A DNA stretch of 64,000 nt from Selaginella moellendorffii (taxonomy: Eukaryota; Plantae; Lycopodiophyta). Numbering within the stretch: position 1 is the first letter of the stretch; every line of letters begins with the position of its first letter. A model generated the notes under the pieces. It saw only the letters and a list, made by a program, of their open reading frames with translations, did no database searches and was not told the DNA's origin. Location of the stretch: contig NW_003314391.1 in assembly GCF_000143415.4 (NCBI RefSeq), positions 310,001-374,000 of the forward strand, read 5' to 3'. Position numbers and translations under genes: made by a program. This document shows positions 35,219 through 59,000 of the stretch, one piece after another.

Positions 35219-36450
35219 TGTAAGCCAACCTATGGGAAGTGTAACCGAACTTTAAGTTCAATCTAATCCGGGGAGGGGGATTGGGAGAGAATTTGGGAAT
35301 CTGTTAATGGATGGTTAACACTTTATTGCTTGTGCAACGAATTATTGAAACTAAGTAAGACCAAGTAGGAGCTAGTGCAATAAGCGGGAACATTAGCAAA
35401 GGAACTTAACTAAGGTCAAGGCCGTGATGGTCAAATAAACATGATAAGGAAAAATTGGAAAGGAAAAATTTGTCAAGCAACCAAGCACACTAAGTTCCTA
35501 ACATCCCTTGGTATAACAAGATTTGATTATGGGACCCTCTAAATCCCAAGCTTTGGGTGCAACACTTGCTTTGGGACATCGAGGGGGAAACATCGTGGTT
35601 TAATGGTCCGGTATGGGTACCCTTACTCCCCCACTTCCATCCCGAGGGAAAGGCCTAATCCCTTAGGAAGGGCGAGGACTAATGAGCCGTAATATACTCA
35701 AGTGGGGTAAAACTCCACATGAGCCGGGAGCACTGCAGTTGATTTCCCTTCCGAGAGTGGGAGTTGCTTTTGAGCACTTCCTTAAATGGCCCCTTTGGTA
35801 CCACCTGAGTCCATGCTCACTCCCACCCAAGGCCCCTAAGCCTTAGCCTCAACCCCAAGCCAGTTTGGAAGCACCACTGTTTAAGACTGGTTCCTAGACC
35901 TCACTATCCCTACTATACTTTTGGACCCCCTGCAGCCCCCCTCTCCCCCTGGGAGACACATGCTTTGGGCTTTCATCTCATGACCTGTATTAGTATTTGG
36001 ATTTGGTCTCAGATTCGATCTTGGACTCGATCTTGAACTCGACCTTAGACCCGGTCTCAAACTCGATCTCAGACTGAATCTTGGACTTGGTCTTAGACTA
36101 GAGCTTGGACTCGATCTCATATCCGACCTTGGACTCTGTTTCGGACTTGATCTCAGACTCGGTCTCAGACCCAATCTCAGATCTTGGACTCGGTCTCGAA
36201 CTCGGTCTTGAACTCAATCTCAGACTCGATCTTGAACTCGGTCTCAAACTTGGTCTTAGAGTCGGTCTCGGACTCGATCTCAAACTTGGTCTCATCCGAT
36301 GAACTCTTTATCATTTCTGTCATGCTTTTGGGGATCCTTTAGCTTACAACACCTCAGGGAGTTGATTCTTTACAACTTCACCACCTATAAAAGAAGTTTG
36401 ATGCCCACATCAAATGTCTCTTTTTAATCTTACGACTTGTTGACCATATC
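35219..36450 (-). mobile_element. Degenerate LTR and PPT region related to the 39961-57712 element, reverse orientation
   Basis: Reverse complement of the LTR hexamer repeats and of CCTACTATACTTTTGG / GCTTTGGGCTTTCA. 36375-36416 matches the PPT region at ~55950-55991. No TSD found. Confidence 0.65.
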
Positions 36451-37911: not shown

Positions 37912-38999
37912 ACAAAGAAATGGATAATACCACAATCATAAACAAAGATATCTTAAAGATAACAGAGTATTAGTAAATAAATCTTAAATTAGAACACAAA
38001 AGTATTCCAATTAAATTATCATCTGATAAACTAAGATTATGGGATAAGAACCACCAAGATCATCATAGTTTAAAGGCATAGGATTAAGTATTTCAAATTC
38101 AATAATAAAACTTAACTACCAAAGATTCCAAATATCATGCTAAACAACTTATGAAAGATAACTCAAAAAACACAAAATATTAACTATAAAACAAGTAAAA
38201 TTCTCATGAATGTATCATCTAAAGGAAATAACATCCCAACCTATCAAAAATAACTTTAGCAACAATTAACATATCAAAATGAATATTGCAAAAGTAGGTA
38301 AACACCTGTTCATGCAAAGTATTGCACCAGCTAATCTGAATAGATCCCAATCAACAATATGAAAGAATTAGAGTTGCTTAAGTAAGCATCAGAAACATTT
38401 TATTGATATCTTAAACCTAAAAGATCAATCCAAAGTAAACCACAAAGAATATATAGTAATGCAAAAAGCAAAAAAATATCAAAATAATAATTAATCATCA
38501 TGAAAGATAAGATGCACAATTATCATTAAATAGCAATTTATGATCCTGAAAAATAGCAAATCATTCAACTTCAATAATAATCAAGGAAAACCTCTAATAA
38601 GAAAAATCAACTATCCTAAATGACAGTCGATCATCACCAATGATTGTTAAATGTGAGAACTAACTTAAATATTAGAACTAATGAGCCAAAATGCCTCCCC
38701 TAATAACTGCAAATAAATTGAAAAATGAGTATGGAAACTCAAAAAACCAAATGCTCACAAAAGTTTATAATTGAGTCTTAAATAACCATGACTACATATC
38801 TTACATAACTAATTTCAATATCAAAGAAGAAATCATTGTATGACTGACAATATCCTTTGACACATCTATAAGCCAAACTTCATATCACTTATGAATATAA
38901 CTTTGATATGCTTGGCTTTTGGTTTGATGCACATATGCTCTTTATTAGTTTTACATTACCCCTGCACTCTTCTTACTATACTTTTGGAACCACCTTGCA

Positions 39000-39955
39000 T
39001 TCTTATCACATGGACAAATAGTCCAAAGGGGCAAAGGTTGCCCATATAGAACAAAGAATAATCAAGTGTCGAAGTAACACTTGCAAGAATAGTCCTTATA
39101 GGTAAGACATGAATACAAGTTGTATTCTGACGAACTGGCACCTCAAAAATGGAACCTTATAAGTTGTTGGATTAGTGAAGTCTAAAAAGCTAAATGACTC
39201 AAGTGGAGTTAAAGAATGATCTTAAAGGACTGGTAGAAGCATTTGAACTGAGGTGTGTCGTACCCCATGAAAGATAGGGAGGATCATAAGATCCAAATAT
39301 GATAACAGTGGGTATCTCATTGATGCTATACTAAAGTTGTGGGAAAAGTGTTTCTAAAAGAAAATAACTTTGGCACAAAGTTGTGTATGAATACTATAGT
39401 GCAATGCTAATTGATAGTTGGCATGAAAAATGACTGCTTTAGTCTTGGCAAAGACTCAAACATGAATGGTAAGTGTTGTAAGGGTAGGCTTGTAAAGCCA
39501 ATGGTGTGGAGACACCGAATGTGCCAAGGTGTGATGCCTTGAGGTCAAATTAACGGGTTCATGAGAACCTTCTCCCAAAGGAATTCTAATAGAAATGGGA
39601 ATGGCATAACCTAAGCAAGAAAGCATATGGTTGGAGTGTGGTGACTCAAATAATGATGGAGGTGTGAAAGCACTAGCAATGAGTTGTAGAACTTGACAAC
39701 TATGAGGCAACTAAGCAAAATGTGCAAAATAATTGATTAAGTTGGTAGAAGGTAATTACTTAAAACTTTTTATTGGGATAAGGAAGTTGGACATACTTTT
39801 ATGGGGGATAAATTGCTTATGTTGCAATATAATAAGTCAATGTCGAAAAAAGGAATGCTTATTGTCAAATAAAGCCATAATTGGGACACCCAAACACTCT
39901 AAAACACCAGAAAGTGGTGTTTGATGTCGTGAGGGCATTAGATAAGGCCTAAGGG
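39000..39955 (+). mobile_element. Older copy of the same LTR family's internal region (target of the 39961 insertion), continuing after 57717
   Basis: Collinear with ~42300-43262; 57718-57900 continues the homology with ~43266-43450. Confidence 0.8.
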
Positions 39956-40189
39956 ACTGCTGTGAGACACAAAGTCCCTAGGCCCCAGAGTGGAGCTGGA
40001 GGGGTGCCACGTGGTAGTGGCCGAAGCGAAAGCCAAACGAGCGTAAAACGTTTGGACTAAAAGCTTCGACTTGAAAGGTTGAGAGCGGGAGTGGAACTCC
40101 CAACAAAGTGTTCAAGGAACGAGCACGAAGCGAGCAATAAGCGAGGCTCCAAAAAGGGACCCAAAGAGACCAACACATGACACGTGGAA

Positions 40190-40762
40190 GTGTCTGAGAT
40201 GGACCCGAGTTGGAGTCCGAAGTGGAGTCCGAGATGGAGTCCGAGATGGAGTCCGAGGTGGAGTCCGAGGTGGAGTCCGAGGCGGACCCGAGATGGACCC
40301 GAGATGGAGTCCGAGGTGGAGTCCGAGGTGGACCCGAGATGGACCCGAAATGGAGTCCGAGATGGAGTCCGAGATGGAGTCCGAGATGGACCCGAGATGG
40401 ACCCGAGATGGACCCGAGATGGGACCCGAGATGGACCCGAGACGGAGTCCGAGGCGGACCCGAGACGGAGTTCGAGGTGGAGTCCGAGATGGAGTCCGAG
40501 ATGGACCCGAGATGGAGTCCGAGATAGAGTCCGAGTTGGAGTCCGAGATGGACCCGAGATGGAGTCCAAAGTCGAGACCGGGACCAAGACCGAGACCGGG
40601 ACCGAGACCGAGACCGAGACTGAGATCGGGACCGAGACCGAGACTGAGACCGAGATCGGGACCGAGACCGAGACCGAGGCCGAGCCCAAGTCCAAGTCCG
40701 AGTCCGAGTCCGAGTCCGAGTCCAAGTCCGAGTCCGAGTCCGAGTTCGAGTCCGAGTCCGGA
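40190..40762. repeat. Hexamer/12-mer tandem repeats inside the 5' LTR (GAGTCC/GAGATG/GACCGA); also at 56220-56710
   Basis: Repeated GGAGTCCGAGAT, GGACCCGAGAT, GACCGA and GAGTCC units; copy number differs between the two LTRs. Confidence 0.9.
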
Positions 40763-43700
40763 GCCTGAGAGGGTGAAAGCCCAAAGCGTTCGTCTCCCAG
40801 ACCCTGGGGGGTTTGGTGAGCTCCAAAAGTATAGTAGGGGGAGGACTGCAGTGGAGCTAGTTTGGCCAGGAAAGGTCAGTTTGGCCCAGGAAGGCCGGAC
40901 CCAGTGTTGGGTGATGAGCTGCCCATTGGGAAGTCCAAAACTAGAGTGAACATGGACTGACAAGCGGGGTAGCTTGGTGAAGTGTTCAAGAGCCGGCTCT
41001 AGTTCCCCCGGGAGATCGACTGGCCGATGCTCCCAGTCCAAGTGTGGGTGGCACTACCTACTTGGATACCAGGTGTGGCTCAACGGAACCTCGCTCTAAG
41101 CCCATGGTTAGAGCACCTAAAGGCGAGAGGTGGGGAGAGTACCTAGGTGGCTCGCATAAGGCCACGGTGTTCCGAAATGGTGTCCCAAAGTCCCAGACTG
41201 TGGAAAGGAAGAGGGGTAGCCCTTTGGTGGGGTGACCAAGGACACAGTCACACAGTGAGGAAGTCCTCGAGGATAGTGGGACTTAGTGGTCGGGCCGGTG
41301 GGCCTTGATCCAGTGGCAGTGTTGGCGAACACAGCCAAGGACAGAAAGGGACTTGGTGGGGACCAGAACAGAGATATTGGGGAAGGCTATTCCCCATGTC
41401 TGTAGGCATCCTAAGGAGGTTAAGGAGTGGATCTGGGATGATCCCTCATGGACGGATGACCCAGTCTTTGAGAGACGGGATTGGAATGCAGGTGGTGTTG
41501 GACCACCAGTGTGACCAAGGTAATTGGGCATGGCCTTAGCGTAACGGGCCGATACGTCGGTGGTACCTTGGGGTGTCGATCATGGGATCGGACACGTGGA
41601 GCACTTGGACCAAGTGCTAAGGTTGAGTGGCATGGATGCCATTCTCGGGGCTAGCAAGCCCCAAGTCCTGAGTTGGACTTATGGAGGTTGTGAATGAGAC
41701 TCCTCCAAGTGGTCGGGGGTGTGGTTAAGTGACTAAAATAGAATGGAAAAATTAGTCGCTTACAACTTGGTATCGGAGCCGTTCCTTAGTCCGACTTTTA
41801 TTGGTGCTAAAGTATATCACCATTGATGTTGGCATCGAAAGGTCCTAGGAGTGGGCCTATCCTTGAGGAGTAGCAGGTCGGGAAGACATGGCTCTCCATT
41901 ACAGTTCCTGTGTGAACTTGTAGGTGAGGTGGTGGATAGAAAAGGGCCAATAATGGAACGACTTTGGGATCTTGGGAACAGTATAAGGGTTTCCTCAGAG
42001 AGCTGAGGATGTGATCCAGATGAGCGTTTGATGCAGCAAACGAGCTAATGTAGTTGTGGTAAACAACTATAGTTGGGATCACGAGAAAGATGCAGACTCC
42101 AAAACAATAAAGGAGTCACAAGATTACCCTTATATGGTTGAGGCTGGTACTCATAAATTTGAGTCCGGAATTGTTGACCGTGGGAGGTCAAATACAAAAG
42201 AGGACACTAGTCCTTGAAATGGTAAGCAGGGCTACCTTTAATAAATGCTGGAACAACCCAAGGAGTTGGGGGGTGTACTTAGAGATGAGTTGGTATTCTC
42301 ATCGCATGGACAAGTAGTCATAAGGGGCAAAGGTTGCCCCCAGAGAACAAAATCAAGTGTCAGAGTAACACTTGTGAAAATAGTCCTTTTGAGTAGGACA
42401 GGAATGCAAGAAGTGTATTCCAGTGAGTTAGTGCCTCACAAGTAGGACCTTACGGGTCTGTGGATTAACCAAGTCCAAAACTGCTGGATGACTCAAGTAG
42501 AGTCAAGAGATGGTCCTAAAAGGACCGATGGAAGCATTTGGACTGAGGTGTGTTGTACCCCACAAAAGATGGGGGGGGATCATAAGATCCAAGGATGAGA
42601 GCAAAGGGTATCTTATCGATGGCAAAATGTGCCATGTTAAAGTCGTGGGAAAGGTGTTCCCAAAAAGAAAACAACTTTGACACAAAGTTGTGTGTGACCT
42701 CTATGATGCAGTGTTAACGGATGGTTGGCATGAGAAAGCGTGGTATTGGTCTTGGCAAAGACTTAGACACAAAGAAGAAGTGTCATAGAGGTAGGCTCGT
42801 GGAGCCGATGGTGTGGAGACACCAAATGTGCCAAGGTGTGATACCTTGAGGCTATGTTGGTGGGTTCATGAGAACCCCTTGCCAAAGGAATCCCAATAGA
42901 AATGGGAATGACATAGCCTAAGCTGCAGAGCATGCAGTTGAAGTGTGGTGACCCAGATAATGATGGAGGTGTGGAAGTACCAGCAATGAGTTGTAGGACT
43001 TGACAACTACGAGGCAACTAAGCAAGAGGTGCCAAATAATTGGTTAAACGGGTAGAAGGTAGCTACCCAAGCCTTCTTAATGGCATAGGAAAGTTGGATA
43101 TACCCTTATGGGGGATGAGTTGCTTATGTTGCGATATAGTAAGTCAATGTCATAAAAGGAAATACTCATTGTCAAGGAAGCCGTCATTGGGACACTCGAA
43201 CACTCTAGAACACCAAGAGGTGGTGTTTGATGTCGTGAGGGCAGTAGATAAGGCCCAAGAGACTAAGTCCCTAGCGAACGATGGATAGTAGGTGCTATCC
43301 AAATGTCCAAGGTGGCGAGACAGGAGAAGACTGTCTACTCGAATTGGACAAAGCCAAAAATGGAATTTTGGCAAGGCTAGTGATAGGCATGCAAAGGCCC
43401 GTAAGCAACAACGTAATCCCGGTGTGTGGGATTATAGGGTGAGCATACCTGGGTTGAGGAACCACTCCCTAGGCTATCGGGTAGGTTCATCCCTAAGAAT
43501 ACTTGCTAAGGCATGATAGAAAGTGCAAAGCTATCCTCATGGTTTGGAGGAGAATGACCGAAGGAAAGGTGTGAAGCCAAAAGCAAGAAGTAAGGGGATA
43601 GAACCGAACCATAGGAATTGAAGGGCATAACCAAGGTTGGTTATGCTAGCTGGGAGTGGAGAATCATGTGGGGGCTCGAGGGTGTTACTGCTAGCAACCG

Positions 43701-45577
43701 TGATGCCATGGAGAGTCTAAAATATGGAATTGTCCATGTTAGACTATATGGTAATTGGAAAGCTTGCAAAAAGGGGGGCCTTAGCAAGCTAAGGGACAGA
43801 GTTCCTTCAAAGTTTCCAAAGAGGATTCTAGGTAGCGTAGTACCTAGAAAGGCCAAGCGTAAATGGTTCAAGGAACGCGCGAAATCAGAGTGGCGCAGCA
43901 AAAGCGTGGTCTTGAAGCTTGCCATGAGGCAAGGCTATCAAGGTTAGGGAAGTAGTTCCCGAGTGTTCAAAGAGAAGGCTTTGAACGAAAGTCGATGATT
44001 AAGGGCTTTCACGCTTGTAGGAACCATGTTACAGTGGTCGGAGGACTTGCCAAAGCGAGATTGGCAAGTCAAGGGAACAAATACCCTAGTTGAAGGTGAT
44101 AACTTCAAAAAAGGGTGGGCCATGGGGCCAAGCATGGAGGAGTCAATGCATGATCACAGGCTTGTCAAGTGAGAAGACTTGGCAGTGGGGAGGAACTAGG
44201 TTCCTAAGCTGTGATCTATAGCGCGCTTTAAATATAAGTTGGTGCACCGGCGTGGGGAGTCACGCCAGGCATCCGGTGTGATGCCGTCTGTAGATGCATA
44301 TACGAAGGTTGGGTTCGAGTCCCGACCCTTTAGTGTTTGGGTTCGAGTCCCAAATCACTAGGGCGTGTGGAGAAGGGAGAAAAAGACAAACTCGAGGATT
44401 CAAGCTTAGGAAAGTAAACTTGAGAGGTTCAAGGTTAGGACTGTATTCCTAACCTTGATGTGAGCAGTAGCGACTATAAAAGTAGGACTTAGAATGTTTT
44501 TAGATGGATCCCTAATACAAAATATATTGCAATACATTGTCATTCTGCCTATCTCTTTGGCTTTTCACAGCAATGTCTTACTTACCCACCGCCTTCAAGG
44601 GATCAAAGGTGTGGGACTAGCACCTTCAAGCACTTGTTCACAGTCTCTACTTGGCTTGGCACAAGCAGATAAGTGCACTCATTTCGTAGTGTAATTTTAG
44701 TTTTAGGGACTAAATTAGATTTGAAACTCCTAGGAAGATCTCGTGTGGACGTTTCCTCCCAGTTTAGAGATTTCAGGAGTTTTCACTGGCGACCACGGTG
44801 GGATAGGCGAAGTGAAGAGCACCCAAAGAATGAAGATTGGCAGCCTTGGCTACAACTAGAAGACGAAGCTGAAGTCAAGAATCAAGGGAAAAATCGAAAA
44901 GAAACAAAAAGAAGAAAACAAAACGAAAAAGAAGAAAATCGACAAAATCCTAGAGCAAGAAGCATGGAAATCATGCTAGAGACCAAACGTTTGAAGGCTA
45001 CGATCATCTAGAGATCGCCCACTTCTCGAAAAGTCCAAGAATCTTCCATAACCGCCTCTTGGTGAGAGGTCAAAGACGAAGAATATTCTATGCATCAGAA
45101 TATTTGAAGAATCTCCGACAAAAAAATCAGAGCAAACAAGTGCTAACAAGCATGAAAACATGAAGAATGAAAAAGCACGACTGCCCATTTGGAGACACAA
45201 GCTGTACAAGATACGAAGACTGCCTTTTGTGTGGTTTCAGAAATTGTGCAAAACCGTACAAGCAATGCTATCCAAAATGGCGATGTGACACTTGCAAGCA
45301 AGCAAAAGCAAGACTCCGAATCAAGGATGAAAATGCCACAGCGGAGGAGAGTAGGAAACGAGAAGAAATAGCCCAAGAAAACGACACCAAAAAGAGAAAC
45401 GATAGTTTAGAACAAGCAGCGAAACAAAGCTTTAGTTGCTTACAAAAACTTCAAGAAACAATTCTGCGACTCTTCTACAAATTGTCTAGCAAATAGGAAG
45501 GATGCAAAAATGAGGAAATGTTGAAAGAAAAATATGTTTACTTCGATTTCTTTGCAACTCGAAGAACCCTGACTTAG

Positions 45578-48500
45578 GTGTATCGCGGACACCTCTTTCA
45601 ACAAACGATTGTTGAATTTCTAGGCATACACAAACATGAAACTTTTCAACCATTAACGCTTGCTTTCAATACTGATTTGACGAGAGTCATAGCAGCAACA
45701 GAGTGTGGAATTTTTGAACCACAAGTTCGTTGGTTTGTGGACACTCTTAAATTTAGAGATTTCGAAGAGAACGCGGAATTACTTTATCGGCTTCTTCAAA
45801 GTCCTCTCCGTGTAACGCTACCAACAAACACTCTTATCGAATTATATGCTATAGCATATTGGCACCGTTTAGGACAGACGAGAATAGCTGGAGAATTAAA
45901 GGACGCCCTGGATGACCTCAAGGACGACAAGATGCCAGGGGAGGACGGCATGCCACCAGCCTTCTACAAACAAAACTGGGATTGGATCGGACCAGAAGTT
46001 CTCAAGATGTGGCAAGAAACCATGCGAGCTGGAAAGTGGCCAGAAGGAGCTACGGATGGGATCATTGCGCTGATACCAAAAAAAGGAGATATGTCCCACC
46101 TCAAGAACTGGAGGCCCATCTCTATGCTGAACACCATGTACAAGATCGTAGCAAAAGCCTTGGCATCACGCCTCAAGCCTCTACTCCCAGAAACGATCAA
46201 GGAGACGCAGAACGGGTTCGTGGAGGGTAGGCAAATCGTGGACAATCTCCTAACAGTGCTGCTGGCGCAAGAACACACCAAAGACATGGCAGAGCAGATT
46301 ACAATCATTCTCCTGGACTTTGAAAAAGCTTACGACCGGGTGGATTGGAAAGTTCTCCAGGCCATAATGATCAAGCAAGGAGTTCCTCTGCAGTTTGTGG
46401 AATGGACAGCATCCCTGTACCACTCGGCATCGAGCAGGGTTACGATCAATGGAACCATGGGACAGTCCTTCAAACTTGAAAGATCAGTCCGCCAAGGATG
46501 CCCCCTCGCACCATACCTGTTCCTGTTTGTTGCAGATGCTCTGGCCTACTACCTCGCCCGACCACAGGGTCCAAAAGGTATGCCCCTTCCAGGCTGCGGC
46601 GCCGCGCTTCAGGACATGAACCAAGCCTCAAAGGAGGACCTCCTATCCTCAGCCTTTGCAGACGACACAAGCCTGATCGTGGAGGGATCACCGGAGAACC
46701 TCTCAAGCGTCAAAAGGGACCTGGACTTTTTCAATGAGGCCATGGGATCGAGAATAAACTGGCACAAATCGGTAGGACTATGGCTCCCCCCCAGCAGACC
46801 TCCAACATGGGGCACGGAGCTGGGCTTCAAATGGCTGGACACGGAGGAGACCACCCGCTACCTTGGATTCCAAGTGGGACGCCAGTATGATCCAGAACCC
46901 CAGAACCAAAAAGCAGTAACAAAACTAAGGGATCAACTCAAGTTCTGGGCGAGCAGAAAACTATCGTTCTCAGCACGCTGCGTGGTGGCTAACAGCATCC
47001 TACTTGGAGCGATCTGGTTCCTGGCAGCATGCTGGAACATGGACAAGCGAACGATCCAGGAAATGAACCAACTCATTCGAACCTATGTCTGGAAAGGCTC
47101 CTCCTGCGTGTCGCGTGGTGGAGCAAAGGTCAACTGGCGGTCAGTAACACTTCCGAAGCACGAAGGTGGCCTCAATATTATTGACATCGAAGAACAATGC
47201 AAGGCTCTTCTCTTCAAAATTTTCACAAGGATGCTCATGCCTGGCCACCAACCATGGAGAATACTGCTGCGAGCACAATTTTTGAAAGTCCTCCCGGACA
47301 GGAACGAGCACACCAGACAAAACTGGGCGCCAGACGAACAATGGCTCTTCTCAGACACCAAACTCAAAATGACAAAGGCTCACACGTTCTCAGGAAAGCT
47401 GTTCAAGCTCTGGAGGCAATTCAAGTGCAAGCTGGAACGTAAACCACCTCGTACCAAAGAACAACTGGACCGGCAGCCAATTTTCCTAAGCAAACTCTTC
47501 GCTGTCAACGGTAAAACGCTCGGAGCTTCAGAGGATCGTGGCCTGGACCAGACATGCAGAGACCTGCACAGAGCAGGGATGAGAACCTTCGCAGAGGCAG
47601 ACACCATGATCCAGCCCAACCAGACGGCCCACAATCGCGACCGCATCAGTACTTTCTACGGATTAACCATCTCAGAACACAGGATGCGTAAATTCCAGAC
47701 AGCCTTTTTAGCAGCCAAACACGCATGCCTTGAACGACTAAACCTGCAAGAGGATCAACACCATCGTTGGTGGAAGCTGGACGAATCGATCGTATGCACC
47801 CTCCCCAACATGGCATCGGGACTAGTCTTCAAGGCAGGACAGGCTGGACGCTTGTACCCCATCGTTACCCCCGAGTACGAGGACCTCCCCGACATGAGTA
47901 GGGCCAAACCGATCAGAGTGATTCAAATGGAGAAAAAAACTGCCAACGTTGATCCACTGATCCCAAAAAACCAATATGCCCGCCTCTACTGGTTCCGCCA
48001 ACAAACCCTGGACGAACTCAAGTGGGATCCTGCAGAGTGGCATTGGAGGGGAACCACGTGCAAGGACTTCTTCCAGTACGAGACCAAGCTGGGCCGCAAG
48101 CTGATCAGGGTGCCAACTCGATCCTCCCTCATCCGGAAAGCAAAGGCCCAACAGATCCGTTCCAGGAACCACTCACACTGCATCAACAAGATCTGGAAAG
48201 GGTGCTGGTCAGCTAAGAACCGCTACTTCATGTGGCTGGCCCAACAAGAACGTCTTCCCTCCCTGGTCGCCATACATCTTCCGAACACAGCCTGCAAGAC
48301 CTGTGGCGCCACAGAAACACAGCGACACATCTTATGGGAATGTCCGGCAGCACAGGAAGTATGGGAAGGTGCAGCAGCGGTGCTCAAACAAACGTCAACC
48401 GGAGGAGCTGCAATCACATACGAATCAGCGCTCTGGGGTAGCTTCATCCAAGGAAAGACAAAGAATCCTGATGCATGGAAGTGGAGACACAATGAGGCCC

Positions 48501-48967
48501 CACACTTTGATCAACTCAACCAAACTCGGACACACATTACGCACCTCCACCAGGAGCTCTTTGATGCGCTTCGGGGATGCACACTAGCAGAGATATGGAA
48601 GGCTCGCTGCGCCAGGCTGTTCCAGGACACGGACCCCTCGGCTCGAGCAACTATCTCAAAGGTTTGGTCCAGACTGATCGTCTCACTCGCGGCCCGCCTG
48701 GACACGCTGATCAAACGAGGCGAGGAAGGGAAGATAGCGAAGGAGAAGAAGCTGTGGCCGTTTTTTAGAGGAAGAAGCGAGGCTGGCGAAGAAGAATGGA
48801 CGTGGAAGCCACCAATATGGATTTGGCAGCACATGTTCAGGAACGAAAGCACGTGTACCTCCCCGAGTCGACAGAGTTCCACATCAGGAACTTCGGAAGC
48901 TTGTAGCTCAGACATCACGGACTCGAGTACCAGTTCTACTTCGTCCCCCTCGTCCCACCCCCCCTAA
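45578..48967 (+). CDS. L1/Tx1-type LINE ORF2 (RT + zf-RVT), 5'-truncated (no endonuclease), in frame with ~105 unrelated upstream codons; no ATG at the ORF start
   Basis: KMPGEDG, IALIPKKG..NWRPISMLN..YKIVAK, QNGFVEGR, LDFEKAYDRV, VRQGCPLAP, FADD, RYLG, CKTCG..ETQRHILWEC. LINE homology starts at ~45893. Confidence 0.9.
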   Translation: MYRGHLFQQTIVEFLGIHKHETFQPLTLAFNTDLTRVIAATECGIFEPQVRWFVDTLKFRDFEENAELLYRLLQSPLRVTLPTNTLIELYAIAYWHRLGQTRIAGELKDALDDLKDDKMPGEDGMPPAFYKQNWDWIGPEVLKMWQETMRAGKWPEGATDGIIALIPKKGDMSHLKNWRPISMLNTMYKIVAKALASRLKPLLPETIKETQNGFVEGRQIVDNLLTVLLAQEHTKDMAEQITIILLDFEKAYDRVDWKVLQAIMIKQGVPLQFVEWTASLYHSASSRVTINGTMGQSFKLERSVRQGCPLAPYLFLFVADALAYYLARPQGPKGMPLPGCGAALQDMNQASKEDLLSSAFADDTSLIVEGSPENLSSVKRDLDFFNEAMGSRINWHKSVGLWLPPSRPPTWGTELGFKWLDTEETTRYLGFQVGRQYDPEPQNQKAVTKLRDQLKFWASRKLSFSARCVVANSILLGAIWFLAACWNMDKRTIQEMNQLIRTYVWKGSSCVSRGGAKVNWRSVTLPKHEGGLNIIDIEEQCKALLFKIFTRMLMPGHQPWRILLRAQFLKVLPDRNEHTRQNWAPDEQWLFSDTKLKMTKAHTFSGKLFKLWRQFKCKLERKPPRTKEQLDRQPIFLSKLFAVNGKTLGASEDRGLDQTCRDLHRAGMRTFAEADTMIQPNQTAHNRDRISTFYGLTISEHRMRKFQTAFLAAKHACLERLNLQEDQHHRWWKLDESIVCTLPNMASGLVFKAGQAGRLYPIVTPEYEDLPDMSRAKPIRVIQMEKKTANVDPLIPKNQYARLYWFRQQTLDELKWDPAEWHWRGTTCKDFFQYETKLGRKLIRVPTRSSLIRKAKAQQIRSRNHSHCINKIWKGCWSAKNRYFMWLAQQERLPSLVAIHLPNTACKTCGATETQRHILWECPAAQEVWEGAAAVLKQTSTGGAAITYESALWGSFIQGKTKNPDAWKWRHNEAPHFDQLNQTRTHITHLHQELFDALRGCTLAEIWKARCARLFQDTDPSARATISKVWSRLIVSLAARLDTLIKRGEEGKIAKEKKLWPFFRGRSEAGEEEWTWKPPIWIWQHMFRNESTCTSPSRQSSTSGTSEACSSDITDSSTSSTSSPSSHPP

Positions 48968-49054
48968 AAATCTTGAAGAGCTCTTTCCCGGTTTCGAGCG
49001 TGTCGAAATCGGACTCTATGGTTTATAGAGGCTAAACTAAATAAAACCCCATTG
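45893..49054 (+). mobile_element. 5'-truncated non-LTR retrotransposon ending at a 26S rDNA target sequence
   Basis: RT ORF, ~87-nt 3' UTR with stem-loops, no poly(A); followed directly by ACAAAGTCGGACTAGA (49055-49070). Confidence 0.85.
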
Positions 49055-49070
49055 ACAAAGTCGGACTAGA

Positions 49071-50707
49071 AAGTTTAGCGAGAAGAGGAGCGCCTTGAGA
49101 GTCGACTTTCGTGCTTGATCCAGAGTAGGAGTAGGACTAGGAGAGCAATAAGGACGATGCTGAGAGCAAGCCGTGCCTTGGTTTCACTGGATTTGCATGT
49201 TCCATGAGCGAGAAAGCGTCAAGAGTACTCTTTTAGTCACTGCAAGCTCTCCACATGGATTTCCCACGATTCCTTTTCACGGCTGGAGAGAGCACATCCC
49301 CACGATCATTCTGAGTCCAAGAACAGGCGATTTGGAGCCAGGAATCAGGAGATCAAGGCGACCCTATCTCTGGTGGCGGCTAGGGTTATGGACGACCTAG
49401 GGATTGCGGCGGCGGCTGAACCACGTACCTTTTCACTGATTGCAACGGTGGGAAGATAGATCCTCCGAAGGAGCACACGCCAGCAAAACTTCGTGGCAAT
49501 CCAACGGTTCACGAGCAAGATCCAAACGTTCAAATTTCGGAACATGGTTCAAGTTGGGGGCTTTGGAGTCCACGGTTGCTGGAACTTCTTCCAAGGACAC
49601 TAGCTGCACAGAACCTCATCGGCAGCGTCCTTCCTTCCTCATTCACTTGGGGTTCGGAGTTTTGGGGTCCGGAGAGCCAAGCTCCACCTAAGGAGGGGAC
49701 AACTCGCTTGGCGCCGGTACGGCTGCTCGTTTGAATATGCAAAGGACACTATTCTCCGACACGCACCGGGTCCTTCAAACTACGTGGCAGCACTTCCCTA
49801 CCCTCCGATTGTACACCTAGTCCCAATCGGCAAAGGAACAACTTTCGACGGCACACTGAAGTCCCAATTTGTACGGTACAGCTGTGTTGGCTGATCCCTT
49901 TCTTGCCTTGGTTGTGGATCCACCATGATCAAGGCACTCGGAGCAACGCCATTTGATGCATGGGATGTTTCGAGGGGCACGGCTCGTGTCAGAAGCTGCA
50001 TCAGGCTAGCTTGTTGGAGTACGGAAACGTAGCTTCAACCCGGATCCGAAAGGAGCGGCTCGCCTTTGGTTGTGATTCCAGATGGATAGCGCCAAGGGTA
50101 CGGCTACACTGGTATGAGGCCGTGGGACTGGCGTGGCGGCACTACACTTGCACGGCCTGATGGGAGGCTGGAAACAGCAATCCCAGTTGGAGGGGATCAG
50201 TCACACAGCAGCGAGGAGAGGACTCCCAGGCAGCAGCAGCATCACCATTACCGGAGACGGCACACTCCTCCTCAGTTCACCGCACTGTGGGATCCAGGAC
50301 AGTACATCTCCAGGGGCTTCTTATATCTCTGGAAAACTGTAGGCGTCATACAGATGGAGATCAAGCAAGGGCGGTGTACCTTCACTGATCTCACGATCGA
50401 CTCAAGTCCTTCACATCTGTAGATGCAACCACATGGGAGAGATGAGGCTGGGGACCATGGATAAGGCGCGAAGTTCACCACCACTACGGATAGGGAGCAC
50501 GCGTTTGCGGAGTGAGTGGCATGGCTTTGGGCAGCACAGAACCGGACACTAGTTCCTTGATCTGATCTGCACAGAACCGAACCGCACTCTAGTTCTAGGG
50601 ATCCTCCCCTCTTCTCAACCCCCCCATATGCTCTTTGCCAGTTTCGAGCATGTCGAAACTGGACCTCTATGGTTTTTCAAGAGGATAAATATGAAAAGCC
50701 CCCATTG
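49071..50707 (+). mobile_element. Non-autonomous 1.64-kb retroelement, copy 1 (LINE-related 3' tail)
   Basis: Flanked on both sides by rDNA-derived 16-17-nt repeats; 3' tail homologous to the LINE 3' UTR; no long ORF. Confidence 0.8.
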
Positions 50708-50724
50708 ACAAAGTCGGACTAGAG

Positions 50725-52373
50725 GGAGAAAACCCTAAGTTTAGCGAGAAGAGGAGCGCCTTGAGAGTCGACTTTCGTGCTTGATCCAGAGTAGGAGTAG
50801 GACTAGGAGAGCAATAAGGACGATGCTGAGAGCAAGCCGTGCCTTGGTTTCACTGGATTTGCATGTTCCATGAGCGAGAAAGCGTCAAGAGTACTCTTTT
50901 AGTCACTGCGAGCTCTCCACATGGATTTCCCACGATTCCTTTTCACGGCTGGAGAGAGCACATCCCCACGATCATTCTGAGTCCAAGAACAGGCGATTTG
51001 GAGCCAGGAATCAGGAGATCAAGGCGACCCTATCTCTGGTGGCGGCTAGGGTTATGGACGACCTGGGGATTGCGGCGGCGGCTGAACCACGTACCTTTTC
51101 ACTGATCGCAACGGTGGGAAGATAGATCCTCCGAAGGAGCACACGCCAGCAAAACTTCGTGGCAATCCAACGGTTCACGAGCAAGATCCAAACGTTCAAA
51201 TTTCGGAACATGGTTCAAGTTGGGGGCTTTGGAGTCCACGGTTGCTGGAACTTCTTCCAAGGACACTAGCTGCACAGAACCTCATCGGCAGCGTCCTTCC
51301 TTCCTCATTCACTTGGGGTTCGGAGTTTTGGGGTCCGGAGAGCCAAGCTCCACCTAAGGAGGGGACAACTCGCTTGGCGCCGTTACGGCTGCTCGTTTGA
51401 ATATGCAAAGGACACTATTCTCCGACACGCACCGGGTCCTTCAAACTACGTGGCAGCACTTCCCTACCCTCCGATTGTACACCTAGTCCCAATCGGCAAA
51501 GGAACAACTTTCGACGGCACACTGAAGTCCCAATTTGTACGGTACAGCTGTGTTGGCTGATCCCTTTCTTGCCTTGGTTGTGGATCCACCATGATCAAGG
51601 CACTCGGAGCAACGCCATTTGATGTATGGGATGTTTCGAGGGGCACGGCTCGTGTCAGAAGCTGCATCAGGCTAGCTTGTTGGAGTACGGAAACGTAGCT
51701 TCAACCCGGATCCGAAAGGAGCGGCTCGCCTTTGGTTGTGATTCCAGATGGATAGCGCCAAGGGTACGGCTACACTGGTATGAGGCCGTGGGACTGGCGT
51801 GGCGGCACTACACTTGCACGGCCTGATGGGAGGCTGGAAACAGCAATCCCAGTTGGAGGGGATCAGTCACACAGCAGTGAGGAGAGGACTCCCAGGCAGC
51901 AGCAGCATCACCATTACCGGAGACGGCACACTCCTCCTCAGTTCACCGCACTGTGGGATCCAGGACAGTACATCTCCAGGGGCTTCTTATATCTCTGGAA
52001 AACTGTAGGCGTCATACAGATGGAGATCAAGCAAGGGCGGTGTACCTTCACTGATCTCACGATCGACTCAAGTCCTTCACATCTGTAGATGCAACCACAT
52101 GGGAGAGATGAGGCTGAGGACCATGGATAAGGCGCGAAGTTCACCACCAGTACGGATAGGGAGCACGCGTTTGCGGAGTGAGTGGCATGGCTTTGGGCAG
52201 CACAGAACCGGACACTAGTTCCTTGATCTGATCTGCACAGAACCGAACCGCACTCTAGTTCTAGGGATCCTCCCCTCTTCTCAACCCCCCCATATGCTCT
52301 TTGCCAGTTTCGAGCATGTCGAAACTGGACCTCTATGGTTTTTCAAGAGGATAAATATGAAAAGCCCCCATTG
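50725..52373 (+). mobile_element. Non-autonomous 1.65-kb retroelement, copy 2
   Basis: About 8 substitutions versus copy 1; ~12 nt longer at the 5' end (GGAGAAAACCCT, giving a telo-box); flanked by ACAAAGTCGGACTAGAG. Confidence 0.8.
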
Positions 52374-52380
52374 ACAAAGT

Positions 52381-52420
<40 letters not shown>

Positions 52421-52425
52421 GATTC

Positions 52426-52477
<52 letters not shown>

Positions 52478-52478
52478 T

Positions 52479-52561
<83 letters not shown>

Positions 52562-52595
52562 ACCGTTTACCCGCGCTTGGTTGAATTTCTTCACT

Positions 52596-52629
<34 letters not shown>

Positions 52630-53095
52630 CGTCAACATCCGCAGGGACCATCGCAATGCTTTGTTTTAATTAAACAGTCGGATTCCCCTTGTCCGTTCCA
52701 GTTCTGAGTCGGTTGTTCGATGCCTAGGGAATGCCCCCCGCGGGGAGGGGCGTTCTGCGTCCGTCACCAGGTCGGCACGCCGGGGCCCGCCCTCGCCGCG
52801 CAAGCAGCTCGGGCAGACCGCCAGCAGCCTACAGGGTCAAGCTGCAGACCCCTAAGCCCAACCCTCAGAGCCAATCCTTTTCCCGAAGTTACGGATCCAT
52901 TTTGCCGACTTCCCTTACCTACATTGTTCCATCGACTAGAGGCTGCTCACCTTGGAGACCTGATGCGGTTATGAGTACGACCGGGCAAGCTCAGCACTCG
53001 CTCCTCCAGATTTTCAAGGACCGCCGGGGGCGCACCGGACACCGCAGGACGTGCGGTGCTCTGCCGGCCGTGAGACCCTATCTCCGGTTGAACCG
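52374..53095 (-). rRNA. 26S (LSU) rRNA gene fragment, orphan and non-functional
   Basis: Reverse complement of conserved LSU rRNA: GTCAAGCTCAACAGGGTCTTCTTTCCCCGCTGATT, CTAATTAGATGACGAGGCATTTGGCTACCTTAAGAGAGTCATAGTTAC, TTTCCCGAAGTTACGGATCCATTTTGCCGACTTCCCTT. Confidence 0.95.
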
Positions 53096-56000
53096 AGACA
53101 ACAATACAAGTATCAACAACCAGATAATTTGGAAGAACAAGATCACGATGATGAACTGGAAATTATCCCAGAAACCGAATGGAAGAAAAGCAAGAAAATA
53201 CATAAAGCAATTCAAGCTGAATTGCAAGCACAAGATCCAGAAACAATCAAAGAACACGACAAACAATCAAACAATCAAGAAACAAGAAGTTTTACCCAAG
53301 AGGAGCTGGTACCTGTTCAGCAGAAAGAAAAGTTTCATGTGGAAGAGCAAGCTGAAGCAAGGTTGAAGCAAAACCTGGTGGAAGATGAACAGCCTGATCA
53401 GATTGAGCAACCAGCAGAAGAAGACGAAGACCTGCAGTGGATAAAGGAGTTTCAGACGCAGGAACTTGAGGTGGTGCTTCCGAAGTTTTGTGAGCAGACG
53501 GAGCAGAAGAAAAATTCAGTGCCAAAGTTTGACGTGGAATAGGCAGCAGCTGGTCAAGCTGGCTTGGAGCAGAAAGCTGTTGTGAAGAAGAAAGAAGAAG
53601 ATGTTAGACAACAAAGAGGTGTAGAAGTTCAGAACCTTGTGGAGCAGCCATCAAGAGGAGCCGTATACCCAGGCCAAAGTTTGAACTTGAAGGTGGCTGG
53701 TGTGAAGTTGGTGAAGAGACGAGGAAGTGTGTTTCTCAGGTTCTGGTGGGACAGAGGCAAGCTGGTTGCATCCTTTGTAGCTCTGTAGGAGTAGAGGAAG
53801 TAAGTAGTAAAGCAGCAAAACTGAAAGCCGTCCAGGAGAAGTTGTGGCTGTTTCAAGTCGGATGTTTAAAGTTTCGAGAAGAGGCGTTTGTGCAACTGAT
53901 CTCGGGAAGAAGCTGGTCAAATTCAGATCACAAGACTTTGAGGAAGCAGCTCAGACTTATAAAGAGGAGGAAGAGGAGGAGGAGCCACATGAGGGAGCAG
54001 CTACCCACGATGCAGCAATGGAGCAGTGACTGCGGGACGCAGCACAAGGCAGTCGTGGGAGAGTGGAGAAGGTAGAAAAAGACAAGCTCGAGGATTCAAG
54101 CTTAGGAAAGTAAACTTGAGAGGTTCAAGGTTAGGACTGTATTCCTAACCTTGACGTGAGCAGTAGCGACTATAAAAGTAGGACTTAGAATGTTTTTAGA
54201 TGGATCCCTAATACAAAATACATTGCAATACATTGTCATTCTACCTATCTCTTTGGCTTTTCACAGCAATGTCTTACTTACCCACCGCCTTCAAGGGATC
54301 AAAGGCGTGGGACTAGCACCTTCAAGCACTTGTTCACAGTCTCTACTTGGCTTGGCACAAGCAGATAAGTGCATTCATTTCGTAGTGTAGTTTTAGTTTT
54401 AGGGACTAGATTAGATTTGAAACTCCTAGGAAGATCTCGTGTGGACGTTTCCTCCCAGTTTAGAGATTTCAGGAGTTTTCAGCGTGGTGATGGTTTGGAA
54501 TATGAGGACACTCATATTTCGGTGGTCATGGACTCTCAGTGGGGAAACTGGTTTGGGCACACCGCCAAGCGAAGGATGCCTCGGAGTCGTGATGCACGGT
54601 TAGATTGCTTAGTGTGAAAGCTCAGCATATCTAACTTGAACGCTTTGGTGCAAGTGGCACCAAGGACGTGGTGAGTGAGATGGGGACACCTAATCTCAGT
54701 TGCTATGAACCCTTGGCCATAAGGGTTGGCTTGGGTGCACCGCCAAGTGTGGGGGATGCCCCCGGGGTTATAGTCAACAATTTGAAGGTCTAGAAGACCT
54801 AGTACCTATTGGCAAACTTGTTAAGGTGCCGAGGTGAGATCACTAGGTGATCTTGTGGCTAAATAAGGACAATGTCTTTGTTTGGGTTAAGGAATAAGGT
54901 TCCTAGTTCAAAGTGTTGATTTGAACTATTGGTGATGGTGTGGCTTGGTCAAGGTGACCAAGTGGGAAAAGCACCTTAGGGAAGTAAGCTATGTCATTGC
55001 GATGGCATAGTGTGAGCAAGGAAAGTAGTCTCTATAAGAGACCCATGGGAGGGTCACAAGTTAGGCCGTGGATAGAGCCCACAGCAGAAGGTGCCAAAGA
55101 GACTTACTAGGGGTGAACACCCTAGTCTTGGCAAAGCAAAGCCTTTGCTATGGAATCAAAGGAATACCTCAAAGAGGGAGGTAGACATTCGGTGTTGCTG
55201 GGTGCAACAATCAACGGATAGGAGCAAAAGATGAGTGGCCAGGATAGGGCCGTGGAATCCCTTGGAAGGAATCCAAGTGGCAAAGTTAGGCGAGGAACAC
55301 TAATGTGTTGGACGCTAACAAATTGCGGGAAAAGAAGTGTGTTTCCAAGGATGGATTCCGAATTGCTCCGATTTGGCAAAAGTGGAAGCTCCAAGGGAGG
55401 GAGCAGTAAGGTAGCCAAATGATAGGGCCATGGACAGCCCTAGCACAAAGTATGATAAATGGAACTTAGTGCCCAAGGTGGCACGAAATAGAAGAGAGGA
55501 TGATGGTGCCCTCAAGTAATGAACTTCCTAGGATGGGGAAGTGGAGTTGCACAATCGGTGCAATGCAAGGTGTTGGAGACACCTAGGAAATTGACTTCCA
55601 AAAGTCAAAAGGGTAAAAGTTTCAAGGTGCAAAACATTCAATAGATGGAAATTGAAATTACTCTAGAAGGAGTAGTGGGATTGACGTAGAGAAGGGTCTC
55701 TAAGAGGTTTAGCGGGAACTAAACCAATAAAAGGAGAGAACCACTACATGTGGTCCAATCAGTCTCTAAGTTGGAGAAACTACCCTCCTTAGAGGATGGG
55801 CAAGGCATGGTGAGCCTTTGGTGTCAAACCATTGAGGAATATGCAAAAGGCATGGTGAGCCTTCAATGTCAAACCCTTGACAAATATTGGCTAGGTGCCA
55901 AGGATGGAAATGGTAACACATGCGGGTGCTACTTTATAAAATGGTTTACCGTTCGATGAGGACATCGAACTTCGTCTATGGGTGGTGGAGTTGTGAGACA

Positions 56001-59000
56001 CAAAGTCCCTAGGCCCCAGAGTGGAGCTGGAGGGGTGCCACGTGGTAGTGGCCGAAGCGAAAGCCAAACGAGCGTAAAACGTTTGGACTAAAAGCTCCGA
56101 CTTGAAAGGTTGAGAGCGGGAGTGGAACTCCCAACAAAGTGTTCAAGGAACGAGCACGAAGCGAGCAATAAGCGAGGCTCCAAAAAGGGACCCAAAGAGA
56201 CCAACACATGACACGTGGAAGTGTCCGAGATGGACCCGAGTTGGAGTCCGAAGTGGAGTCCGAGATGGAGTCCGAGATGGAGTCCGAGATGGAGTCCGAG
56301 GTGGAGTCCGAGGTGGAGTCCGAGGCGGACCCGAGATGGACCTGAGATGGAGTCCGAGGTGGAGTCCGAGGTGGACCCGAGATGGACCCGAAATGGAGTC
56401 CGAGATGGAGTCCGAGATGGACCCGAGATGGAGTCCGAGATGGAGTCCGAGATGGACCCGAGATGGACCCGAGATGGGACCCGAGATGGACCCGAGACGG
56501 AGTCCGAGGCGGACCCGAGACGGAGTCCGAGGTGGAGTCCGAGATGGAGTCCGAGATAGAGTCCGAGTTGGAGTCCGAGATGGACCCGAGATGGAGTCCA
56601 AAGTCGAGACCGGGACCAAGACCGAGACCGGGACCGAGACCGAGACCGAGACCGAGATCGGGACCGAGAACGAGGCCGAGCCCAAGTCCGAGTCCGACTC
56701 CGAGTCCGGAGCCTGAGAGGGTGAAAGCCCAAAGCGTTCGTCTCCCAGACCCTGGGGGGTTTGGTGAGCTCCAAAAGTATAGTAGGGGGAGGACTGTAGT
56801 GGAGCCAGTTTGGCCAGGAAAGGCCAGTTTGGCCCAGGAAGGCCGGACCCAGTGTTGGGTGATGAGCTGCCCACTGGGAAGTCCAAAACTAGAGTGAACA
56901 TGGACCGACAAGTGGGGTAGATTGGTGAAGTGTTCAAGAGCCGGCTCTAGTTCCCCCGGGAGATCGACTGGCCGATGCTCCCATTCCAAGTGTGGGTGGC
57001 ACTACCTACTTGGATACCAGGCGTGGCTCAACGGAACCTCGCTCTAAGCCCATGGCTAGAGCACCTAAAGGCGAGAGGTGGGGAGAGTACCCAGGTGGCT
57101 CACATAAGGCCACGGTGTTCCGAAATGGTGTCCCAAAGTCCCAGACTGTGGAAAGGAAGAGGGGTAGCCCTCTGGTGGGGTGACCAAGGACACAGTCACA
57201 CAGTGAGGAAGTCCTCGAGGATAGTGGGACTTAGTGGTCGGGCCGGTGGGCCTTGATCCAATGGCAGTGTTGGCGAACACAGCCAAGGATAGAAAGGGAC
57301 TTGGTGGGGACCAGAACAGAGATATTGAGGAAGGCTATTCCCCATGTCTGTAGGCATCCTAAGGAGGTTAAGGAGTGGATCTGGGATGATCCCTCATGGA
57401 CGGATGACCCAGTCTTTGAGAGACGGGATTGGAATGCAGGTGGTGTTGGACCACCAGTGTGACCAAGGTAATTGGGCATGGCCTTAGCGTAACGGGCCGA
57501 TATGTCGGTGGTACCTTGGGGTGTCGATCATGGGATCGGACACGTGGAGCACTTGGACCAAGTGCTAAGGTTGAGTGGCATGGATGCCATTCTTGGGGCT
57601 AGCAAGCCCCAAGTCCTGAGTTGGACTTATGGAGGTTGTGAATGAGACTCCTCCAAGTGGTCGGGGGTGTGGTTAAGTAACTAAAGTAGAATGGAAAAAT
57701 TAGTCGCTTACAACTGCGTCCCTAGCAAATGATGGATAGGAAGTGCTATCCAAATGTCTAAGGTTGCGGAGATGGGAGAAGTCCGTCTACCCGAATTGAA
57801 CAAAGCCAAAAATTGATTTTAGCAAGGCTAGTGATAGGCATATAAAGGCTCATAAGTAACAATGTTAATTCTGATATATAAGATTATAAAGTGTAGCACA
57901 CGTGGTTTTGACCCTTTATCCTATGGTGATTTACCATAGGATAACACCATGAAGCGGAACCTAAATTCTTTTTGTGCCACGTGACAGATGCCACGTGTCA
58001 CATGCCACGTGTCTATGCCACGTGTCCATAGGAACCCGAGGTTCAGGGCCTTGGGCCACAAAACAAAGGAACGGTGCCAAACTCCCAAGCATGGAGCCAA
58101 GGAGTGACGGAACCGAACCACAGAGCAACTCCCAAGCATAAAGCCCAAGGAGCGAAAGGACAGGAGCCCGAAGCAACTTGGAACAGTCCTAGAGTAACCA
58201 GCATCCCAATGCTAGGACTAGCACGCAAAACGGAGCCAAACGAAGTCTAGCGCTATTTCAGCATACTGGTGGCCTAATGCGAGGACATGGGTACTCTACC
58301 AGCTAGCATGGAATGGAACTTGGGCTTAGACCCAAGCCGGACGCAGAACAAAGACAGGCACGCAAGCGGGAGCTAGACTATGCCTCAGGTTGGTCAGCCA
58401 TGCTCGACCTACCCACTATCCCTACTATACATTTGGAACCCCCCAAAGCCAGCCCCCCCCCTGAGGAACACACGCTTTGGGCTTTCACCCCAAGCCTCCC
58501 TTAGTATCAGAAGTTAGTCTCTAGGACAAGCTCGAAACTTACCAAATATGGAATGTCTTTAAATTGCGAATTTGGACACAGGACGAACACCATTGTGTTC
58601 AAGCCAATCTCTACATTCCGTAGATATGCCAAATGAGCAAATCTGGACACTTTCCATAAATAGCATTTGGGACTGAAATAAGACTAACACAAAGGGCATG
58701 ATAGCGAGGGTGTTTGGCAGACACAGTAAGCTATCATCTAGTGATATTGAGGGACCAATCTCAATATCACGGGGGTTCTTGATACTAGCAAGTGCAAGAC
58801 AATGACACAAGTTTCTCAAACCAGGCCGAGTATGCTCAACAAGAAACACATAGGGTTCCTACCTTATGTTTATCCAATCTAAGTGCATGTTCATTGACCA
58901 GTTTCTCAACTAGCTCAAGTGGTAAACTGATAATGGGTCCAGCAATACCGACCTCCTGCCATCGTGGCAGTAAGGAAAGAATATCCGAAAGGACTAGCCG

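Follow-up and report, generated by a model that had tools for sequence, protein, structure and literature searches.

Target-specific long interspersed nuclear elements (LINEs) fall in the restriction-like-endonuclease clades, the Tx1 group and the R1 clade (PMC4640811), and the LINEs described as specific for ribosomal DNA (rDNA) are from animals (literature including PMC4640811, PMC1919474 and PMC3414825). Insect R1, assigned to the stringent class, forms tandem arrays at its target, in which the copies are separated by a 14-bp duplication and non-autonomous elements bearing the R1 tail are interspersed, and its 3' junction is located 60 bp 3' of the R2 site (PMC3414825); the endonuclease of R1Bm is itself sequence-specific (PMC1919474). 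The present analysis concerns a 64-kb stretch of the genome of the lycophyte Selaginella moellendorffii (contig NW_003314391.1, positions 310,001 to 374,000), termed the window and counted from its first letter, in which a LINE and two non-autonomous elements are stacked head to tail against a fragment of 26S rDNA. We regard it as likely that a Selaginella-specific L1-type clade, equipped with two open reading frames (ORF1, and an ORF2 comprising an apurinic/apyrimidinic endonuclease (APE), a reverse transcriptase (RT) and a zf-RVT domain), retrotransposes with a strong preference for one 26S rDNA site. With slightly less assurance, it also seems probable that a land-plant L1 lineage has independently evolved R1-like homing to the large-subunit (LSU) rDNA, at a new site and in antisense orientation, with its own promoter in place of co-transcription by RNA polymerase I, with transcribed partners, and with re-targeting of copies of the site outside rDNA arrays. 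No description of a plant rDNA-specific LINE, Selaginella included, was found in the literature, Repbase and Dfam lying outside the search.

The closest parallel is insect R1 (R1Bm and Drosophila R1, with the R2/R1 short internally deleted elements, SIDEs), for which the arrangement of stacks plus partners has already been described (PMC3414825). Both systems couple an APE endonuclease to a fixed nucleotide of the LSU rRNA gene, both leave a short duplication (14 bp in R1, 15-17 nt in Selaginella), and both dispense with poly(A) and have stringent recognition of the 3' untranslated region (UTR), which in Selaginella is predicted from the sequences. The Selaginella system differs in that its RT is similar to L1 ORF2p, is accompanied by a plant-type zf-RVT and falls in a clade of its own; its site lies 163 nt 3' of the R2 site, compared with 60 bp for the R1 junction; its insertions are antisense to the rRNA; and its partner is an unrelated 1.65-kb body, apparently self-transcribed, rather than an internally deleted derivative with a ribozyme. 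R2 resembles the proposed system in being rDNA-specific, in target-primed reverse transcription and in a structured 3' UTR recognised by the RT, whereas it consists of a single ORF with a C-terminal restriction-like endonuclease in place of an APE, and it inserts in the sense orientation at TTAAGG|TAGCCA, a site left intact in the window, to be co-transcribed with the rRNA. The Tx1 group (Tx1L, Keno and Mutsu) shares an L1-related APE and targets that are multicopy sequences (PMC4640811, PMC3747384); by description only, as the tree presented below contains no Tx1 reference, it differs in its animal hosts and in its targets, which are Tx1D, U2 small nuclear RNA, 5S rDNA and microsatellites. 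The nearest relatives found for the Selaginella LINE are plant sequences.

Typical plant L1s are dispersed, and most of them terminate in poly(A). The Selaginella LINE has the same APE-RT-zf-RVT order and the same two ORFs, but it lacks an A-tail and occupies one fixed nucleotide. As in pairs of an ordinary plant L1 and its short interspersed nuclear element (SINE), the non-autonomous partner has the 3' end of the LINE, an arrangement that reportedly also occurs in a stringent monocot L1 lineage; unlike plant SINEs, the Selaginella partner lacks a head of the RNA polymerase III type, in that no Rfam family was found in it.

The stacked elements and their 26S rDNA junction

Exactly three copies of the 16-mer ACAAAGTCGGACTAGA are present in the 64-kb window (49055-49070, 50708-50723 and 52374-52389), where no further copy was found even with two mismatches allowed, and three matches were obtained in none of 100 shuffles. 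Every one of the three copies starts directly after the 3' end of a retroelement. The first, a 16-nt target-site duplication of antisense 26S rDNA (49055-49070, plus strand), follows a 5'-truncated LINE of what is termed here the LINE1 lineage (45887-49054, plus strand), which terminates in ...CCCCATTG at 49054 (in longer form ...AACCCCATTG). The second and third follow the non-autonomous elements A (49071-50707, plus strand) and B (50725-52373, plus strand), both of which end in ...CCCCCATTG (longer form ...GCCCCCATTG), at 50707 and 52373, respectively. These two copies are 17-mers with a terminal G; copy 2, the second duplication, covers 50708-50724 on the plus strand, and the third passes without a break into antisense 26S rDNA. 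It is this third one (52374-52390, plus strand) that represents the original target copy, being the first 17 nt of an orphan 26S rDNA fragment on the minus strand (52374-53096, 722 bp, approximately Rfam LSU positions 1720-2442).

The Rfam family LSU_rRNA_eukarya was detected on the minus strand at 52428-52931 (529.6 bits), and a forced alignment extends the match through the 17-mer to model position 2442, which places the insertion nucleotide at 2442|2443 of the LSU model. The R2 site, read here in antisense as TGGCTA|CCTTAA, is uninterrupted at 52536|52537 (LSU model 2279|2280), so that the insertion point is 163 nt 3' of it in the rRNA sense and the duplication occupies the positions 146-162 nt downstream, with the elements oriented antisense to the rRNA. 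A sequence-only reading of the window, made before any database search, had already described three head-to-tail elements, each followed by the 16- or 17-mer, a third copy seamless with antisense 26S rDNA, and a site about 146-162 nt downstream of an R2 site intact at 52536/52537. All of its coordinates proved correct, the continuity being borne out by Rfam and by the forced alignment to 2442, and two refinements can be added, namely that the LINE meets non-LINE DNA at 45887-45899 and that the rDNA ends at 53096.

The LINE contains a stop-free open frame of 1024 codons at 45893-48967 according to the ORF list and its translation, in which Pfam recognised RVT_1 at about 46073-46876 (4.6e-30) and zf-RVT at about 48158-48364 (5.8e-08); APE and ORF1 are absent from this truncated copy. 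Copies on other S. moellendorffii scaffolds are 91-96% identical and extend upstream into Exo_endo_phos, the APE domain, and Exo_endo_phos, RVT_1 and zf-RVT are all present in full-length relatives. The closest protein matches are gene models of S. moellendorffii (86-95% identity); outside Selaginella the identity falls to about 30-40%, and the few named matches there are plants. The features of a plant-type L1, that is, an N-terminal APE, RVT_1, a C-terminal zf-RVT and a separate ORF1, were all found in one of the other S. moellendorffii loci described below (L003), and both APE and RT in another (L001). The poly(A) or A-rich 3' end of plant L1s is missing, since all 14 tails lack an A-run and terminate in ...CATTG, ...GTTTA or ...ATTTA.

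Human L1 ORF2p stands well ahead of all other solved structures as a relative (1e-42, compared with 1e-16 for R2), and no match to the endonuclease chains of R1Bm or TRAS1 was obtained at E<=0.001. An RT tree was constructed from 31 RT-containing proteins, which are database hits only, most of them unnamed, and contain neither R1 nor Tx1 references; in this tree the five rDNA-associated elements constitute one clade with two sub-lineages (SH-aLRT 100). Membership in the R1 clade is contradicted by the position of the site 163 nt 3' of the R2 site and by the L1 ORF2p affinity, and membership in the R2 clade by the N-terminal APE in ORF2 and the intact R2 site. These sequence comparisons support the assignment of the window LINE to the L1 type, with a plant-L1-like RT and a Selaginella clade of its own. 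The sequence-only reading had called it a plant L1/Tx1-type LINE, and the L1 part of this agrees with the APE, RT and zf-RVT found and with L1 ORF2p as the best solved relative; a full-length element with ORF1 and APE, of the kind that it had suggested recovering, is present in L003, where it belongs to a second lineage.

Elements A (1637 nt) and B (1649 nt, apparently full length) have no ORF longer than 102 aa. Eight substitutions separate the two (99.5% identity, with a period of 1666 nt), and the first 12 nt of B are missing from A. In a sensitive blastn comparison, the LINE, or anything in the seven fetched loci, was matched only by their last ~78 nt. This conserved 3' tail, located in the LINE at 48980-49054 (plus strand) and common to A and B, is composed of an invariant GCTCTTT, a 9-bp hairpin (48989-48997 pairing with 49003-49011) and the terminus, which in the LINE is ...CCCCATTG, as judged from 14 aligned tails. 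According to RNAalifold, four of the nine hairpin pairs have changed on both sides across families with the pairing kept. No Rfam family was found above threshold within 49071-52373, and this absence, the length of 1.65 kb and the internal T-runs all speak against a SINE; a SIDE is not indicated either, because similarity to any LINE of the window or the seven loci is confined to the last ~78 nt. Our reading of these sequences is that A and B are probably non-autonomous partners furnished with the recognition tail of the LINE.

The near identity of A and B and their regular period of 1666 nt could also suggest that the pair, or the whole stack, is the product of tandem duplication, unequal crossover or an assembly artefact, and it is consistent with such an origin that no contig bridging the junctions of the window was present among the matches listed. 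The comparison with reads and contigs covered 45000-50760, and the loose ends considered were the best 15 of 62. However, the 5' ends of A and B differ by 12 nt and the duplications are 16 and 17 nt long, which a crossover would not produce; similar mixed stacks with other truncation points are present in an independent Sanger assembly; and contigs from other runs display the 16-mer followed by a truncated A or a truncated LINE, or preceded by the tail of the sister lineage. An origin by duplication or artefact is accordingly considered very improbable, and successive insertion remains the preferred explanation of the stack.

Recurrence at other loci and strictness of targeting

Seven S. moellendorffii loci (L001-L007) were fetched through the gene models of the closest proteins. 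In the window and six of these loci, the 15-mer ACAAAGTCGGACTAG plus 0-2 target bases follows 13 of 15 element 3' ends. Two LINE lineages and two non-autonomous families are represented among the 13 on-target ends, which show four tail types, and each downstream neighbour is truncated 5' at a different point. What characterises an rDNA-specific element, many independent copies at one fixed nucleotide of the rRNA gene, is therefore seen at LSU 2442|2443 for 13 of 15 ends. The on-target junction recurs in L001, L002, L003 and L005, and in all four arrays that reach rDNA the LSU strand is opposite to the elements.

L001 contains, head to tail, two LINE copies, a second-lineage fragment and a further element, with the 15-mer after each of them. 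L002 contains a stack of a LINE, a 214-bp LINE 3' fragment, a differently truncated LINE and a non-autonomous element, which ends in antisense LSU at the same nucleotide as in the window. The full-length element of the second lineage in L003 encodes an ORF1 of 749 aa and a 1499-aa ORF2 in which APE, RT and zf-RVT are all present, shares about 50% protein identity with the window LINE, and terminates in ...GGCCCCGTTTA, after which come the 17-mer and antisense LSU. In L005, a third family (45% identity) has the same junction and adjoins about 4 kb of LSU. L007 harbours the nearest Selaginella LINE outside the clade, and no recognisable LINE 3' end was found in it. The interpretation of the 16-17-nt spacer as a regenerated target duplication between stacked elements, put forward in the sequence-only reading, is sustained by the 13 of 15 junctions in the window and six loci, as is its proposal of sequence-specific, repeated antisense insertion at one 26S nucleotide, with the restriction that the preference is not absolute.

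The two remaining ends are copies of the window LINE family, of which eight were sampled. At L004 the tail (LINE copy end at L004 11249) is succeeded by ACAAAGGGTATG..., and at L006 (LINE copy end at L006 13473) by ACAATAGGCAGG...; the latter flank is another repeat, which is present also in L005. The rest of a 15-mer or 16-mer split by a later transposon interruption was sought downstream and not found within these two loci. Since the L004 and L006 ends lack the full 15-mer, the 15-mer is target DNA and not part of the element. Among the observations that the sequence-only reading had named as fatal to it, a 17-mer fixed inside the element at non-rDNA loci is thus contradicted by L004 and L006, and unrelated 3' flanks are seen at these two copies and not at the other 13 of 15 ends. 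On these counts, the preference for the 26S site is strong, not absolute.

The same two copies bear on the notion that the elements themselves end in the 15-17-mer, as a 3' terminus derived from rDNA, and that the stacks arose via recombination or 3' transduction. The 15-17-mer indeed stands after every stacked element, and none of the four arrays reaching rDNA has rDNA on its 5' side, the rDNA being found only 3' of the elements. Nevertheless, the copies outside rDNA end in ...CATTG plus ACAA(AG) without the rest of the 15-mer, the identical 15-mer follows tails as unlike as CATTG and GTTTA, and the stretch is between 15 and 17 nt long, a variation expected from a staggered cut. We therefore attach very little credence to an element-borne terminus and favour a duplicated stretch of target DNA.

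Both off-target flanks begin with ACAA or ACAAAG, which suggests that the last bases of the template RNA pair with a primer strand ...TTGT. In its extreme form this would mean that long recognition is dispensable, that priming occurs at short ACAA(AG)/TTGT microhomology, and that the rDNA site is struck often because it exists in thousands of copies; the lack of poly(A) in these elements, which implies that terminal pairing probably matters, points in the same direction. ACAAAG, however, occurs 64 times in the 64-kb window, about once per kb and several times within the rDNA itself, too often for short priming homology by itself to account for the clustering at one nucleotide; 13 of 15 junctions coincide there although they stem from two LINE lineages with about 50% protein identity; and no element sits at the other ACAAAG sites of the rDNA pieces. 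Priming by microhomology alone is hence judged unlikely, and site preference in the insertion process itself is retained as the better account.

Several observations weigh against such site preference and have to be set beside the counts. The L004 and L006 copies share only ACAA(AG) with the target in their otherwise unrelated 3' flanks, and no duplication is visible at either. The rDNA expected on the 5' side of the arrays was not seen in the seven loci by Rfam and an approximate plant-25S pattern, which makes this a weak blank, and the 5' side in L003 is hidden by an LTR (long terminal repeat) insertion; consequently, the duplication has never been seen to flank a single insertion in intact rDNA. 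All loci seen are orphan or decayed pieces of rDNA rather than rDNA arrays, the sample reached through gene models is small and non-random, and none of the matches listed was an independent contig bridging 45899, 49054 or 53096.

Candidate retrotransposition mechanism and transcription

Cleavage, priming and recognition are suggested here as steps that would account for the observed anatomy and for the observed one-strand RNA-seq coverage of A. Retrotransposition would proceed by target-primed reverse transcription, in which the APE would nick the rRNA-sense strand after ...GACTTTGT (LSU model 2442|2443), and the nicked 3' end would prime complementary DNA (cDNA) synthesis on an RNA ending in ...CATTG, or in ...GTTTA in the sister lineage, probably aided by pairing with a few read-through bases (ACAA...). 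Cutting of the second strand 15-17 nt away would then generate the 15-17-nt duplication, which recreates the target, so that later insertions would land there and build head-to-tail stacks. The RT may recognise the structured 3' tail with its hairpin, and the non-coding A and B, which carry this tail, would on that account be mobilised in trans. Elements inserted in antisense cannot be carried along on the rRNA transcript and would need a promoter of their own.

In one RNA-seq run of 2026, the body of A is covered to a depth of 44-97, with first mates on the minus strand only. First mates on the minus strand correspond, in most stranded libraries, to RNA of the element's own sense. Seven reads of this run have unmatched 5' ends of up to 19 nt that resemble the 5' terminus of B, and the B-type 5' end is also present in a contig of another run; the body of the LINE reaches a depth of 0-2 in the same run. 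As far as one run and seven reads indicate, the A/B partner appears to be transcribed in its own sense and from its own 5' end, not with the rRNA. A 2.06-kb non-coding element in L002 carries the tail of the sister lineage, and the only block that it has in common with A/B is the 14-nt TTGAGAGTCGACTT, situated about 25-45 nt from the 5' ends (window 49095-49108 and 50761-50774; L002 11317-11330) and absent from the fetched LINEs. This block could be part of a common promoter or head.

If the proposed targeting is true, sequence-specific targeting by an APE has arisen convergently in the plant L1 clade. With insertions in antisense, targeting is uncoupled from co-transcription with the rRNA, which provides a natural experiment on whether selection favours rDNA homing for the sake of expression or simply because it is harmless. 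It would also provide a natural plant retrotransposon with a built-in safe-harbour address. Plant genome engineers are reportedly importing the animal R2 to write DNA into 25S rDNA, and a native plant enzyme together with an RNA tail of defined rDNA address would be a candidate tool.

Placement within nested retrotransposons and neighbouring repeats

The whole stack is situated in the internal region of an LTR retrotransposon, designated Z (44368-54481, plus strand), whose LTRs (44368-44785 and 54064-54481) are 418 bp long, 97.4% identical and delimited each by TG...CA, and which is flanked by the 5-bp duplication GCGTG at 44363-44367 and 54482-54486. Z is in turn contained in an outer LTR retrotransposon, X (39961-57712, plus strand), with LTRs of about 1.8 kb (39961-41764 and 55992-57712, about 92% identical), a primer-binding site TGGTATCGGAGC from 41768, and the 5-bp duplication ACTGC at 39956-39960 and 57713-57717. 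Apart from the LINE frame, no ORF of at least 130 aa, the threshold of the ORF list, is present in the internal regions of X or Z, and Rfam detected no other rDNA in the window.

At the 5' junction (45891-45899, plus strand), GAGAATTAA is common to the LINE and Z, which amounts to a microhomology of 8-9 nt: LINE contigs match the window from 45891, and contigs of the Z family match it up to 45899 and then diverge. The continuation of the Z contigs, aligned with its start anchored, corresponds to 53097 onwards, with the score peak exactly at 53097 and only 0.14% of window positions scoring as well; a free local alignment of the 30-mer of the host empty site to the right flank scored 10, compared with a window-wide best of 13, and was no better than chance. 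At the resolution of these alignments, the 7.2 kb from about 45891-45900 to 53096 are accompanied by no duplication and no detectable host deletion, and the microhomology on the rDNA side is at most 2 nt. The rDNA continues in L002 and L003 past the point that matches 53096. On this alignment evidence, the 7.2-kb stack with its 722-bp rDNA is one clean insertion into Z, not an rDNA array.

The most likely route is the capture, at a DNA break, of LINE cDNA that had been read through into its rDNA flank; alternatively, a DNA fragment from an inserted rDNA unit was captured. The lack of rDNA on the 5' side of all four arrays that reach rDNA is compatible with 3' read-through, although in L003 that side is hidden. 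Since the host sequence takes up again at the very next nucleotide, template switching while the LTR element was being reverse-transcribed is a less likely route. The arrival of A and B may have preceded or followed the ectopic capture.

Two other interpretations of the boundaries were rejected. The BLAST ends at ~45887 and 53096 had been considered as the limits of a shared unit, but other LINE copies and the rDNA extend further, and these ends are private to the locus. The repeat at 39961-41767/55992-57715, which abuts the LINE in L003, had been regarded as a 5' part of the LINE and is instead the LTR, as indicated by TG...CA, the primer-binding site and the 5-bp duplication.

Copies of the X LTR flank the LINE-rDNA block of L003 too, in opposite orientations, and the X LTRs of the window hold arrays of a 12-bp repeat at 40137-40770 and 56168-56725. 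The left flank of X (38999-39958) recurs uninterrupted within X at 42295-43417 with 79% identity, which identifies the flank as a repeat family, one copy of which served as the target of X.

In L002 (13334-14758), the antisense LSU beside the array runs straight into a compressed match to small-subunit (SSU) rRNA (14097-14758, model 1-1831), a scrambled rDNA pseudo-unit by a host gene with an S1 domain. In L005 (11955-16074), about 4.1 kb extend over LSU model positions 1-2442, roughly 1.6 kb beyond expectation, and neither 5.8S nor SSU was found after this LSU piece; the rDNA unit probably carries further insertions.

Elsewhere in the window, diverged repeats in multiples of 93 nt (60-77% identical) are located at 65-1278 and 18529-19707 and have the appearance of arrays of a protein repeat of ~31 residues, possibly pentatricopeptide-repeat genes on the minus strand. 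Three tandem repeats were also observed: a coding-like one with a period of 21 nt at 2425-2697 (AGATCAAGGAT...), one with a period of 135 nt at 33145-33549 (three copies, 92-98% identical), and one with a period of 12 nt and about 25 units at 35985-36291.

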